Shown here piece after piece: positions 4,601 to 48,339 of a stretch of 64,000 nucleotides of DNA. The number at the start of each line of letters is the position of its first letter. The stretch's first letter is position 1. The translations under genes were made by a program, and so were the position numbers. The notes beneath the pieces are model-generated. The model made no database searches. It had not been told where the DNA came from and saw only the letters and a program-made list of their open reading frames with translations. The stretch is from Polymyxa betae A26-41 (taxonomy: Eukaryota > Protista > Endomyxa: Phytomyxea). Where the stretch lies: contig RBZT01000855.1 of assembly GCA_003693705.1 (NCBI GenBank), positions 236,981-300,980 of the forward strand, given 5' to 3'.

Positions 4601-7600
4601 CGAGATATTCTGCGCTCGTTTCTTTTGTTCTGACCATCGATCAGGTAAGTGATGCTGTCCATGCACTCGTTCAAGGTTCGGTGGAGTCGCGGCTGTTCTC
4701 CGGCTCTACTATTCGCTTTTTAATGCCTCTATTCGAAGCTGCTGCTGCGTGCCTTTCGTTATCTACTTCGATGCAGTGCATTTCAGTGCTGACTGCACAT
4801 TCAACGGTCTCTGATCTCCCTGTGGACCGTGTTTTGGATCTATCATTAGAGATTCTGAAAGTTCCTCGAGGTGCACCGGATGCAAATACGCTTCTTCACG
4901 GTGTCAGTCCCTATTTAAAACCGATCCATATTGACGCTCTTATTGACGATCGTGGTCTGCTTTCTTCAAGTCCTTTTTCTCGCAAGGTTGCTCTTGAAAC
5001 TTTGGCGCTTTCATCATTGCTTCACTCTCCTAATTCTCCAGAGCTGGTTGCAAAACTGTTCTTAATGACCCACGATGACGATGCTGAACAAAATCTAAAA
5101 AGTGATGCCGAGCGTATCTGGCATCAGTTCGGATTCAAGTACATTCCAATTATTCATATTCTGACCCCGCTGCTCTCCCACCCGACTCCTTGGGTCCGTC
5201 GCACTGCTGCTATTAGCTTCGGCTATGCTATTCGCCGGCAAGACGATGCTGATCTGCAGATTGCTTCGCTCTTAAATCTGATCAAAAACAATCCTGATGA
5301 GATGGTCCAATCGCAGTTCGACATTGATGCCCGAGAAATTGGTTTGATGAGTTTCAGTTTTGGCTGTATTCTGCTCACCGTATTCTAGATCGATCTGCAA
5401 CGAGGGTGTCAGCTTTTATTGCTCTTGGTTATGCCGCTCCAGCTCTGTCCCAAGACAGTATAATGAATTCCGTTCAGTAATATTCTGTAGTATCAACTCT
5501 CAGTTCGTGCTTAACAAGTTTTTTCCAGGTTTATTCTTGAAACAGGATTTCTCGATAAAAAACCTGCTGTTTGGAATGCAGCACTGCAAGCTGGATTGTC
5601 AATCATCAGTACAGATCTGGACGCATCGTCTGTCCGTGATCTTCAGTTGCTCCTTGATAAGGGTTTGTCATTGGGTATCGATAGTGGTATGTTGTCCTGT
5701 CGGCAGCTCTTTATACTTTCCTTATCGTTATTCAGTATCCGAAGGCGCTATCGTTCTGATTGGCCGCCTGGCTCAGTTTTTAGATCCGAAAACTGACTCT
5801 GAACAAGTTAAAGCCGTTTTTTCACGCCTGATTGATGCTCTTCGAATTCCGTAAGTTTCTTCACGTGTCCTCTTGTCTTCCTTTGTCATCTTATGGCCAG
5901 GTCGTATTCCGTTCAATGTGCTGTTGCCGAGTGTCTTGTCCCGTTGGCAGGAATGCTTCAGGATGATGAACAGAAGCAAGAAGCGTTCAACCGTTTGATT
6001 GAAACCGTTTCGGGTGGGAAAACCTATGGCGACAGAAAAGGCGCTGCTCTTGGTCTGGCAGGGCTTGTTAAAGGACTTCGGATTTCGAGCTTGAAAAAGT
6101 CATTTTCTGCCACTTTTCGACCGTTTGCTAAAGGATGCCTCAGGTACGGAGTACTGAGCGCCCTCACCACGATGGCGAAGGATAAGCGATCTCATACAAA
6201 GCAAGGTGCCTTGTTCTGTTATGAAGCACTTTTTTCGGCTCTTGGGAAGCGATTCGAGCCATATCTGCCGCATTTGATTCCCGATCTGCTCGCTTCTTTT
6301 GGGGACCCGGTTAGCGAAGTTCGCGAAGCCACTCAAGAGGTGTGCCAACTGCTTGCCATTTTTGACTGTTTAGTGGGTGATGTAATACGTTTTGTTTAGG
6401 CTACTCGTGTCGTTATGGCTCATGTGACAGCTCAGGGTGTCAAGATGATGTTGCCTCATATTCTTAAGGTTTACCGCAACACCGCCTGTGTCTAACCCTA
6501 TATTCAGTGTTCTCAGGCTCTTGACGACGATCAATGGCGAACCAAAGTCGAATCGATTGGTATCTCGTTCTGTTTCTCCTAAATTAAGGTTTGGTGAATG
6601 GGGGATTTCAGGAATGTTGGGCTCAATGGCGTTTTGCGCTCCCCGGCAACTTTGTGCTTTCCTTCCGACTGTTGTACCTCGACTTACTCGCTGTTTGGCC
6701 GATCCACATCCAAAAGTTCAAGAAGGCGGTAAAAAGGCCCTGGCTGAAATTGGTTCAGTGGTCAGTTTTTTTCATTTCGAAGCTGACTCAAATTCAACTG
6801 TTTTCAGATTCGAAACCCAGAAATTCAGTCTTTGGTGCCTTCTTTGTTAGCCGCTTTGATAGATCCGTCTTCTAGCACTCGGGACGCCTTACAACAACTT
6901 CTTGATACTTCGTTCGTCAATTCTGTCGATGCTCCCTCGTTGGCGCTGATCATCCCCATTGTAAAACGAGGCTTACATGACCGATCGCCTTCCGTTAAAC
7001 GAATGGTGATGTCTCGCTTACAGCCGATTTTTTGCTTATATGTTATCGAATTAGGCCGCATTAATTGTCGGTACTATTTGCGAATTCCTTCGCGATGTTT
7101 CTGCGATTTTACCTTACACCAAGTCCCTGCTGGATGATCTACAAAAAGTTCTAATCGATCCCATTCCTGACGTTCGGGCTTCCAGTGCCCGAGCAATGGG
7201 TCTCCTCTTCAAAGGTGTCGGTGAAGTACATTTCCCGAACTTAATCGGTGCGGTAACGACCTCGTTGTGGTATTCATCTAACTGTTGCTTTAGATTGGCT
7301 TCTTCAGATGCTCTACACGAATACCTCCAGTGTTGAAAGAAATGGTGGTGCTCAGGTATTTCACCACAAGTCAGACGCTGTTTCTCTTCTAAGCGCGTTG
7401 TCAGGGTTTAGCTCAGGTGCTCGCAGCACGTGGGCTTTCAGCGCTTTCTGACTATTTGGATGTCATCCTGGAGGGCGCTGGTCATAACGAATCTAATGTA
7501 AGGGAAGCGTATATGGAGATTTGGGTTTATCTTCCAAGGGCCTTTGGCGGCCCGCTTCACATCTATCTGGAAAGGGCTCTGCCAGTTATTATCAATGTAT

Positions 7601-41877: not shown

Positions 41878-44800
41878 CTACAAAGATAAATTAAATGCAT
41901 TAGTGTCATCATCAGAGACGGTATCGTCGTCATCATCGTCCGAATCGGTAACCATATCGGCTTCGTTATCTGGTTCATCACCTTGATCGTGATCGTGATC
42001 GTTGTCGTGACTGTGATCGTGTTCATATTGTTCCAGATCCATTTCGTTGAAGTCCATTCCACTCTCACTGAGGATCAGATCTTCATCGTCGCGCTCATCA
42101 TGAGCAAGAGAGCTTCCTTCGGTTTCAGCTTGATGATTAATGACGCTTGTGACTTCGGAGATAGGAGCAGAGCCATTCTCATTCAACCTTTTCCTAGCAA
42201 GCTCGAGAAGGGCTAATACATGATCTTTATCAAAACCGGACTTTGCGGCACTCTCGAAGAAATGAACCGCGAGATCATATTTCTGAAGCGAGCCATTTGC
42301 AAGACCCATCAGAATATTGGCTTGCGGCAGGTTCGGGTCTTCATTTAGAATGGATTCGCATTCAGATAGACATTTAGGGAAATCGCCGCTCTCGTACAGA
42401 GCCATGGCAAAAGTTAAACGGACGAGATGTTGGGAATGTCCACCTGGAAAGGAGAGAGCTTTCTTGCAATCATCTCCTGCTAAAAGTGGCTTGTCCAAAG
42501 AAACACGAGCTATGCCACGATTGCCAAAAGCATCCGAATACGTCGGATCAAGCTCAATCGCCTAATCATTAAAATGAGCCAGTGGGAAGAAGTCAGCAAG
42601 AAACCCGACCTTGAAAAAATCCCTAACTGCTAAATCTGACCATCCCCTCTCTGCATAAGCAATACCTCTGTTATTGTATAAAGATGCACGATCAGGATAT
42701 TTTGATATCCTGGAAAATCCAGCTTAAAGGTTTGACAACACTCAAAGGGCCGATTACCTTTTCGTTAGTTCTTGGATACAGCGGTCGAAGTCGCCTTCTA
42801 GCAGGTATCGGAGACTGATATCCGGATCATTGGCATGCTCGGGAAAATCGGTCACGCGAGAGATGCCAGAATAGCTAACCCGTTTCTTGGGTGCTCTCGC
42901 ACTCGAAGAATGTGCAGCAATATTCTCGATATTGGACTGGATGTATTCCATCATAGTCTTACGATCCGTAATCTCCAGGGACTGGCCACAATGAACAAAC
43001 AATATATATCTCTACCAACAAAGGATTTACCTGCCACGATGGGCAGACACCACGATGCCAGCCAAGACCGCATCCTTTCACCCGGCCGTCGGGCGGCTGC
43101 AGAGCCCGACACACTCTTGCGAAATTGGCGGTCGTGCCAGTATCTTCGCGATACTTATCAACATAGGTCTGCAAAGAAACAATCGGATGCGAGCATGGTC
43201 GAGAAGATGACAACTGACTTTCACACCGTCTCTGGAAAGAACCCCAAATGCTGACCAGCTGTTGCAAACCGCCATTCGATGGAAAGGCTCCCCACAACCA
43301 ATCACCCGCCCGTCAGGCGGCTGCGGAAGATTACACAGCTTTTCGGCATCGGGGCGGAATGTAGCCGCCTTTCTGGGTTTACTCTGAGCCCGAAACGTGC
43401 GAACCTTTTTTATCGCCTAAAAAACCATTATATTGAGCCGAAAAATAATCAAAGCTTTAACCTCTTGCCGTGTTAGCACGTCCATTTCTGCCCAGGCGGC
43501 ACAAATTCGACCTTTATGGTTCGGTGCGCCACAGCCCCTTAAACTTCCATCGGGCGGCTGGATAAAATCGCACAGCTCTACAGCTGGATCCGGATGTTCC
43601 TGATGCCAGGCAAGCAAAGCCGGTCGAATTTCCTCAAACTTTATCACATTCTGAGCCCGCCAGGAATTGCAAACTGTGCCACGATGTTGGATGCCGGAGG
43701 AACAGCCACGGTTGACACCATCAGGAGGTTGAGGGATAACACAACGGTCCTTATCTGGCAGTTTACGAATCATGCGATTGCTATTCATGCAGTCAAAACG
43801 CAGAATTCAAACTCAGCTGGCTTAGGGCCGTACTCGTTTTTAGCAAACCCAGAATTCGGAAATCGTTTCTTCCACTCCAAGAGCCTTTGTCTGACCTCGG
43901 GTAGAGTCAAGACACCAGCTGCGATCCACGTATTGCAAACATTATCAGGATGTGCAAGCTATTGTCCCGTGTTATGGACATCGACAGCAGCGGGGTGGAA
44001 TATTACCTGACCACATCCTTGCTTTAGCGGGCCATTCTGATCTGGGAAGGGGGGTTGCCTCATTGCACACATTCGATTCAATGGGATCGAGGATGCAGAC
44101 AGTTGAGATGAGGTGAAAGCGAAGACCCGATCGTGGATTTGGTTTGAGTGCGTTAATCCCTGAAAATAATATGTTATTAAATATCGTTGATATCAATTGA
44201 TATACCATTTGCTGCCATGCATAGCAGGGAATAGGAGCATGGGCAGCTTGGCCACAGCCTAACCAACGACCATCGGGCGGCTGTGGCAGCCGGCATGCAA
44301 GTAAGCCCTGAGCGTTCGGTTTCGTTCCAGACTAATAAGGATTAACATTACGCAGCTAAACGGGAAAATGCATACTTCATCGCCGTTGCTGGGAAGGGAT
44401 GTATTTCCAACTGATTGAATCACGAGATTCGACGCAACCGAGAAGGAAGCATGCTGTATTGAAGTTGAACTCATTGCAGATGCGGCATGCTGGAGACGTT
44501 CAAGATTCATTAATTTGGTATGGGCTGTCATCTATAATGGGTGTTACAAACGAATGATTTCGATCAGGTGAAATATGCAACTTACATCCAGATCCGTATT
44601 GGACAAATTGTGATTGTTCACGATGGTGGCAGGAACAGCATCTTGGGAAATTGGAGTCACATCACTACCGTATTGATTTGCAGATGTCATCAACGGAGCT
44701 GGATTGCTCGATTCCAAATGGTAACTTTGCGGATCGTCCTGGTATTGAGTCAATTATACGGTTAGGAAAACGCGGGCATTTCATACCGGTGCAGATGTAC

Positions 44801-45158
44801 CCATGGTCGAATGCAAGCCTATATCTCCAGCATTGGTTAGCTGGGGAATCAAGCTTGCACTTCTAGCGACGGCGAACTGCATACTAAGGCCCAGATTTCC
44901 AGCATCGAACGACTGAATAAGCACGCCCAAATCTCCGGAGTTTGCAGGCGGTATTACATTGGCCAGATTTACAAGTTGGGGTGGACTAGAAGAAGGGACC
45001 ATGGACGTGTATGCAGAAGCGGCTTCAGCCGCTCTTAGCACCTGAAGAGCGCCTGCCTGCGAATTGCTGGGTACTGCCGGGTTGCCAAGCTCCTGTATGT
45101 GATCCTCCTGAATGGGTCTGTCGGGCGGATGTAAACCATGGTTTGGGTCATTGGACAT
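41878..45158 (-). CDS. Protein with low-complexity N-terminus, six CCHC-type QPPDG repeats, ~5 TPRs and a His/Asp-rich tail
   Basis: Spliced translation shows six Cys/His modules (43031-44295), then TPRs (YNNRGIAY..RG..DLA..DF.KAIELDP.Y.DA..NRG), then HDHSHDNDHDHD and poly-Asp. Confidence 0.85.
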
Positions 45159-45930: not shown

Positions 45931-48339
45931 ATGGTCAATGTCGACAGTCTTAATCTGCTTATTGATACGCCCAATTACATTGAACATCGGCGTGCGATGA
46001 CGGAATTCTTAGCGACGCATCCTGCTTTTAAAAGAAGGAAGCATTCTATTGTAGGTGTTGTCCAATTCATTAGATTGATACTCAATCTCTTTTCGGGTAT
46101 GCCAATTGACCAGCAGCGCGAGCACTGCATGGAGCAAGTTCGCGTTTTGGTTTCGGAATCGGGACTCTTCAATCTACGCGACCAATTCGAGGTTCGTCGA
46201 GAAACGATCTGCACTTGCGGTTATCAATTGGTATCCAGAAACCAGATCGTTGGGCTGCGACAGCAGAACCGATCGCCTATGTTGATAACAATCTGCTAAC
46301 CAAACTTGGTGTCTTGTTTAGCTTGTAAGGGAGAGAAACTTGGTCATTCAGATTATCCTCATCTTTCACAAAGGTTTGGGTCGTCCTTGTTCTTGCTCGG
46401 CTCGGAATATCATATCAAGAGATACTGTACGCTTAACAACTTTGAAAGCTTCTTCTAAGCATGCGTTTGTAGGGAATGATGTTGAAACACTCAAGGTTCG
46501 AGGTTGTTTCTGCATGACAGAACTGGGACATGGCTCAAACGTTCGATCGCTGGGAACTACTGCTGTCTATAGCTCTGATACGAGACAGTTTATACTGAAC
46601 ACCCCTAATGATTCGGCACAGAAGTACTTCATCGGTCGAGATCTGGTTTTACCAATGCACATCGGCACTGAATGAACATCAGGGGGTCTTGCTGTGCATT
46701 GCACACACGCGATTGTGTTCGCCCAATTATCTGTCGATGGGAAATCTCGGGGTGTTCATGCTTTCATTGTTCAATTGCGGGATGAATCAAACAAGTTATT
46801 GCCAGGCGTTCATATTGTCGATTGTGGACCTAAGTCAGGTTAGTGTCTTGATCTATTAAGTACCTGCCAATGATGTCGTTGCTTTAGGATTGAACGGGGT
46901 CTGTGAGATGTTTCTTGCTGTTTGAAGAGGTTGAATAATGGGCAGGTTGACAATGGTCGACTTTGGCTCTCCAACGTTCGTGTTGATCGACTTGCACTTT
47001 TGAACCGTCTCGCGACTGTTGATGAGAGTGGTAAATACCATTCAGAAATGGCATCGAATAACGCTCGCTTTGGAAAAATGTTGGCGCTTTTGGCCCTCGG
47101 TCGAGTAGGTTAGAGCCGGGTTAAGGGCTCGAATCGCTCCTTATCGTACATAGGCGTTGCAGTTTCGGCAACAAACTTTAGCAAGATCGGACTCTATATT
47201 GCAATTCGTTATGCGTTCTCTCGACGCCAATTCTCTATCAGTGATAGCCAGCCTGAGATCCCGATTATTGAGTACAGCACTCATCAGCTGAGACTGTTCC
47301 CTTTATTGGCGCGAACATTCGCCATCAACCTTGCCCTAAGCGATGTGAAAATGGTTTCCGTCCTGTCATGAAGAGGGGGTATTCTACTCAATCCCTGTTT
47401 CAGGAAGCGTACTCGAAATCTGGCAACGCCCAAGCGTATTTGGATTATTTGAATGACAACTCTAAAGAGGTGCACATCTTGACCTGCGGAATCAAACCTA
47501 TCGCCACCTGGCACCGGTACTCTACATCTTCATTACCATTATTGTGCTTAGCCACGTTCAGGAGGCGCGTACTTTACACATGTCGGGAATGTTGTGGTGG
47601 ACAAGGAATTCTAGCATCAAATCTAATAGGTGTCTTGATATCGGAAACAGACGCAGATATCACTTGGGAAGGAGACAATACTGTGCTTTTACAGTACGGA
47701 TGCTTTCGAATAATCAACAAGAAAGCATTCTGATTTTGAATCAATAGGCAAGTGGCAAGCCATGTACTGAAAGCTTTCGTAGGCAAACTGCGTTCGACGT
47801 CAAAGCTTAGGTTGGCACAGCAATATATGAAATCGGTTACCGTTGGGCGATTGGGTAACGATGGAGGAGGCAACTTTCAAGATCGATCATTCTACTTGAA
47901 AGCGCTCGATTTCAAGCAACGAACCTTGTCAATGCATTGTATGAAGATTCTCCGTCAACTGAAATTCATCGACGATGCTCAGAAAAAATTCGACATCTTT
48001 AACCAAGTTCTGCCCACGATGCTGGATCTGGCTGTGTCGTACATTGAACATGATATATTGCTCCGTTTTGATAAGGCGATTGACGCCTGCCAAGATGAAA
48101 ATCAAACTATTTTGTCGAGCTTGTTTCAACTCCATGCTGCCCATCTTCTTGATGAGAATATGGCATTTTTCCAAGCAGAAAGGTATATTTCTCCAACTAC
48201 CGCCAAAAATCTGAAAGCTTTCATCTTGGAGCTCTGCGCAAAGATCAAACCAGAAGCACTCAATCTAGTAGCAGCATTCAAAATCGATCCCAGGCTAGTC
48301 GACGCTCCCATTGCACACGATGAAAGTAAACCAGCGTGA
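45931..48339 (+). CDS. Acyl-CoA oxidase (multi-exon; true start may be about 45803)
   Basis: GCFCMTELGHGSNV..L.T.A.Y....QFILNTP...AQKY.IG, GLNG/VDNG, IAIRYA..RRQF, CRECCGGQG and the catalytic ITWEGDNTVL. Confidence 0.93.

Follow-up and report, generated by a model that had tools for sequence, protein, structure and literature searches.

In a 64,000-nucleotide stretch of the Polymyxa betae A26-41 genome (contig RBZT01000855.1, forward-strand positions 236,981 to 300,980; this whole stretch is called the window here, and positions are numbered from its first letter), we analyzed a minus-strand gene encoding six copies of a small cysteine- and histidine-containing module followed by a tetratricopeptide repeat (TPR) domain. 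The coding region extends over 41878..45158 and comprises 12 exons (45158-44787, 44738-44586, 44531-44376, 44331-44206, 44159-44007, 43958-43834, 43780-43462, 43416-43219, 43168-43031, 42981-42758, 42709-42610 and 42561-41878), which together give 2748 nucleotides, or 915 codons and a stop codon. The model was built exon by exon from open frames with GT-AG borders. Each exon reads open in its own phase. The coding sequence alternates among the three minus-strand frames between 45158 and 41878 with two codons split by introns, and a stop codon directly precedes the ATG at 45158. All 11 introns are GT-AG introns of 44-54 nucleotides. Spliced contigs from the runs X1 and X2, which belong to two independent studies and for which the library type is unrecorded, skip all 11 introns exactly at the modeled borders and are otherwise identical. 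The gene is thus transcribed and its repeats are in frame in the mature message. That splicing across several introns unites the six repeats had been proposed by a sequence-only reading, in which the window had been inspected with its open reading frames as the only aid.

The six modules, each of about 55 residues, are encoded by exons 4-9 at 44295-43031 on the minus strand, and all of the six repeat peptides quoted in the sequence-only reading are present in the translation of this region. The module core is C-x3-Q-P-P-D-G-x3-G-C-(G)-x3/4-H-x3/4-C-x2-W, and the tryptophan is followed by x3-G-V-x-[TS]-x2-[ED]-[VI] and then by an amphipathic helix. The spacing between the first and the second cysteine is C-x12-C in five of the six modules and C-x17-C in module 2, while that after the second cysteine (the cysteine of the GC pair) is C-x4/5-H-x3/4-C-x2-W across the six: modules 1, 2, 4 and 5 have C-x4-H-x4-C, module 3 has x5 and x4, and module 6 has x4 and x3. 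Measured from the first cysteine to the tryptophan on the minus strand, module 1 is located at 44215..44295, module 3 (C-x12-C-x5-H-x4-C-x2-W) at 43660..43743, module 4 at 43492..43572, module 5 at 43255..43335 and module 6 at 43034..43111. Module 2, which had already been described as the longer copy and as split by an intron, carries a hairpin loop longer by five residues and is interrupted between GCGQ and LAH by the intron 44006-43959, which was confirmed in the spliced contigs; its N-terminal half, from the first cysteine to GCGQ, lies at 44007..44069 and stops at the intron, and its C-terminal half with the histidine, the third cysteine and the tryptophan lies at 43926..43958. The cysteines are confined in a regular manner, with none in exons 1-3 and exactly three per module in exons 4-9. 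Exons 4-9 together have a net charge of +19 and are flanked by acidic regions.

All sequence searches with this gene were run on its single exons, its modules or module alignments. A six-frame motif scan of the window found no copies beyond these six, and profile searches of the 27-Mb genome, with the window modules and with the wider family alignment, matched only this gene. The E values in the genome were 1e-19 to 4e-8 for modules 1 and 3-6, each in full, and for the second half of the split module 2; the first half of module 2 scored 0.013, and the next-best place in the genome 0.72. Given that both the motif scan and the profile searches return only this gene, the six modules are not a chance pattern.

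Downstream of the modules, a TPR domain of about five repeats is encoded by exons 10-12 at 42187..42822 on the minus strand, with two introns inside it. When the last exon was compared with PDB sequences by phmmer, consensus or engineered TPR proteins were matched at E values of 9e-18, 2e-8 and 4e-8 (residues 1-106), and SGTA, RPAP3 and STI1 were matched weakly. The single-repeat scores for Pfam TPR_1, TPR_17 and TPR_2 were slightly below their cut-offs. Tandem 34-residue helix-turn-helix repeats that match TPR profiles, by which tetratricopeptide repeats are defined, are present, and the fusion of the modules to a TPR domain that had been read from the sequence therefore holds.

We then searched 1.84 billion representative proteins with a profile built from five of the window modules. 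At E ≤ 0.001, five proteins were obtained, comprising four true relatives and one spurious low-complexity repeat, and the four relatives are unnamed open reading frames from Logan assemblies. P0001 (loci L006 and L007, with a guanine-cytosine content of 62-65%) is a colinear ortholog of window exons 4-12 with 36-78% identity and has seven modules and TPRs, and P0004 (L011) has at least five modules before its contig ends. In P0002 (L008, 457 amino acids), three modules are placed right at the N-terminus and are followed by a helical TPR-like domain, and P0003 (L010, 444 amino acids) has the same layout with three N-terminal modules. The order of modules followed by TPRs is accordingly kept in these two distant relatives, and window exon 11 matches the best-conserved stretch of their TPR-like domains (E = 3e-6 for P0003 and 0.002 for P0002). 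The contigs carrying L008 and L010 are gene-dense with long uninterrupted genes, including a CNOT1 open reading frame of at least 1961 residues, DONSON, thiolase and Rpc4, and their hosts are, from these long uninterrupted genes, apparently intron-poor eukaryotes.

The orthologs differ from the window gene in structure. The ortholog in L006 has an extra N-terminal module at 4723-4803, and so does that in L011 at 1456-1536, where the window gene has its cysteine-free exons 1-3; no such seventh module was found upstream by the motif scan of the window. The introns after exons 4, 8, 9 and 10 are common to the window gene and L006, whereas three other confirmed introns, 44006-43959, 43461-43417 and 42609-42562, are missing from L006, whose corresponding segments run on without a break. 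This shows that introns were gained or lost between related species.

Other searches added no further members. A word search with exon 7 gave no match, and one in which P0002 and P0003 were aligned with the piece from L011 returned only those two known proteins. When metagenome contigs were scanned with a degenerate DNA pattern, the three matches obtained were all chance ones, high in GC and containing stops. No annotated plasmodiophorid protein was among the matches, although an ortholog exists in a relative (L006), which means that the searched collections under-represent eukaryotic gene models. The module family is narrowly distributed, its rarity being that within the collections searched.

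Conservation was evaluated in an alignment of 24 rows, representing 23 modules (one in two halves) from five loci. All 23 modules share the residues C, Q, P, G, C, C and W without exception, and nearly all other positions vary. The histidine is also present in all 23; it occupies one column in 19 of them and is moved to the next column in four. The conservation of three cysteines, a histidine and a tryptophan claimed from the six window copies thereby extends to the 23 modules, with the histidine falling in one of two neighboring columns. Window modules resemble their same-numbered counterparts in L006 most (55-86% identity, with 68% for module 1, 86% for module 5 and 84% for module 6), as compared with 40-55% between paralogs, from which it follows that the array predates the split of these species and that each copy has been kept under constraint.

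For the fold of a single module, AlphaFold2 was run on the full unit of module 3 (43755-43588) with the 24-row alignment, and a model with a predicted local distance difference test (pLDDT) score of 87.4 and a predicted template modeling (pTM) score of 0.69 was obtained, while exon 7 alone without an alignment gave a poor model with a pLDDT of 36. In the model, residues 8 and 16 are paired in a beta-bridge, a short helix (30-33) begins directly after Cys29 and a long helix covers 40-53; the last of these supports the helix that had been expected after each module. From the register of the bridge, Cys5 and Cys18 would be adjacent to each other where the two strands of the QPPDG hairpin meet its base. 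Foldseek found no match to this model in the PDB and VIA-align found none among 48,161 chains, both searches being insensitive for a domain this small (56 residues) and this poor in secondary structure, so that a new fold is not proven by them. In the ESM Atlas, a feature search gave no usable match and a shape search gave only unrelated rows with template modeling scores of 0.38-0.50. Sequence-profile searches of the PDB with alignments A1 and A2 gave chance matches only (E > 0.1).

The module also has no match among described families. None of the 24 single module sequences had a significant Pfam match at E ≤ 10, no module match was found in nine exons at E ≤ 1 (a scan from which exons 2 and 11 were left out), and Pfam scans of the relatives likewise gave no significant match for the module. 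Literature searches yielded nothing relevant on the QPPDG motif or on the ligand spacing. The sequence-only reading had called the module unrecognized, and neither of the two counterfindings that it had named and that were looked for here, a described Pfam domain and transcripts that leave the repeats out of frame, was found.

The remaining parts of the protein flank the modules and the TPR domain. Exons 1-3 (44376..45158, minus strand) encode a low-complexity acidic N-terminal region with a net charge of −14, which has no counterpart in the ortholog locus L006; the two of these exons that were scanned, 1 and 3, had no Pfam match. Within a disordered-looking acidic stretch of exon 1 (45158-44787, minus strand), we observed three short similar motifs, N-[SA]-G-[DN]-[LI]-G-[VL]. 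At the other end, an acidic tail rich in His and Asp is encoded at 41881..42186 on the minus strand, and the last exon as a whole has a net charge of −39 and 11 His residues. This tail is not conserved in L006, where the match spans only residues 1-147 of the 227 in the last exon. Upstream of the gene, open frames at 46340-46860 on the plus strand resemble exons of an acyl-CoA oxidase or dehydrogenase when their translation is read by eye.

From these features, we estimate with a probability of roughly 60% that the protein is a cytosolic or nuclear adaptor composed of an acidic disordered N-terminus, six modules acting as structural zinc sites with three Cys and one His each, a TPR domain of five repeats and, at the end, a tail that is again acidic. 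In each module, the first cysteine and the GC cysteine would bracket a short beta-hairpin with the invariant QPPDG as its turn. The GC cysteine, the histidine four or five residues on and the third cysteine would form a knuckle with the retroviral-type C-x4-H-x4-C spacing, against which the invariant tryptophan and the following amphipathic helix may pack. Zinc is most likely what the modules bind, judging from the pattern of their conserved residues. The N-terminus showed no hydrophobic signal peptide on direct reading, which argues against disulfides between the cysteines. Three to seven such modules in a row would make a flexible array, which we infer to be a multivalent binding surface, and the TPR domain would dock a second partner. 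As for the ligand of the array, single-stranded nucleic acid is favored on slender grounds, by analogy with tandem knuckle proteins and from the net charge of +19 on the module exons, which are set between acidic regions; this charge is weakly consistent with nucleic-acid binding. A protein ligand would be nearly as likely.

Several observations weigh against the adaptor with structural zinc sites. The histidine is shifted by one position in four of the 23 modules, single modules range in net charge from −5 to +6 and do not clearly indicate a nucleic-acid role, and neither the neighborhood nor any named relative gave a hint of a pathway. What was read from the AlphaFold2 model, moreover, was its secondary-structure string and pLDDT, of which the ligand geometry is not a part.

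A further-reaching version of the same idea is that the module represents a new metal-binding fold, one that has no structural neighbors and originated within a narrow protist group. Its array, coupled to the TPRs as a dock, would then read either single-stranded nucleic acid or a repeated peptide in a multivalent manner. We regard this as possible but distinctly doubtful. If true, plasmodiophorid parasites and their relatives would have an adaptor of a new kind.

It is unlikely that the module is a very divergent form of a known small zinc finger, such as AZUL, the retroviral-type CCHC knuckle or the MYT1-type C2HC finger, and not a new family. Its GCG motif and x4-x4 spacing do resemble those of AZUL and the CCHC knuckle, and one of the 24 module sequences, in one relative, had a weak Pfam AZUL match (12.7 bits against a cut-off of 23.8, E = 0.06-0.15). 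However, when the genome is searched with the Pfam AZUL model, this gene is not among the matches; three other places are, two of them above the cut-off (G000:C882:106858-106944 and G000:C949:18413-18493, or L015 and L016, with GCG-x3-C-x4/5-C), and hhalign of alignment A2 with the AZUL sequences of the genome (A4) gave a probability of 3% over 16 columns. Nor did any of the 24 modules match PF00098 at E ≤ 10, as did none of the exons or P0002 and P0003 at E ≤ 1; PF01530 had no module match, and the first ligand pair of the module is C-x12-C and not C-x2-C.

There is a slim chance that the three cysteines and the histidine hold an iron-sulfur cluster or perform redox chemistry, as in CDGSH/mitoNEET, in place of structural zinc. 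The ligand set is invariant, and zinc and a 2Fe-2S cluster are indistinguishable from sequence alone. On the other side, zf-CDGSH and other iron-sulfur families had no Pfam match at E ≤ 10, the CDGSH motif has a ligand order and spacing unlike those of the module, zinc knuckles typically have the C-x4-H-x4-C spacing, and six to seven clusters in a single non-enzymatic TPR protein would be unusual. A similarly small chance is left for a metal-free mini-domain held together by hydrophobic contacts or hydrogen bonds, in which the conserved Cys, His and Trp would be purely structural or binding residues: the metal-free AlphaFold2 model would suit it, but the retention of three Cys and one His through 23 diverged copies with most other positions variable is what one usually sees at a metal site, and 30-residue modules with little secondary structure seldom fold without metal or disulfides, the latter being disfavored by the lack of a signal peptide.

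In sum, the domain family is real, expressed and conserved, we found no description of it, and it probably falls within the small Cys/His metal modules. This class of modules gains a well-defined transcribed family whose 24 copies from five loci are already aligned and whose fold is predicted with confidence, so that it is suited to deposition and testing. Since plasmodiophorids are root parasites that cannot be cultivated and their proteomes are mostly unannotated, a conserved single-copy protein of this kind is a reasonable target for basic biochemistry. Its wider importance is limited by the narrow distribution and the absence of a functional link.

Compared with known systems, the C-terminal domain is like that of TPR adaptors (consensus TPR proteins, SGTA, STI1 and RPAP3), none of which has this module; the likeness is generic TPR similarity, by which no partner is assigned. 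With the AZUL domain of UBE3A (PF16558), the module shares a GCG motif, after which come two more ligands, spaced by x4, and then a helix, but AZUL has only cysteine ligands with the fourth about 28 residues downstream, whereas the module has three Cys and one His. The CCHC zinc knuckle (PF00098) shares with it the ligand set Cys-Cys-His-Cys, a Gly adjoining the second Cys, an aromatic residue near the site, and tandem use in three to seven copies. CNBP/Gis2 is itself a tandem array of seven CCHC knuckles. The claim of the sequence-only reading that the spacing is unlike that of a zinc knuckle stood for the first cysteine, which is displaced 12 residues upstream (17 in repeat 2) across the QPPDG hairpin where the knuckle has C-x2-C, but not for the last three ligands, whose GC-x4-H-x4-C arrangement in four of the six copies is that of a knuckle. 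In addition, the knuckle measures 18 residues, whereas the module measures about 55 with an obligatory Trp and a 14-residue helix. The module is predicted to be knuckle-like in its working but stands outside the CCHC knuckle family.
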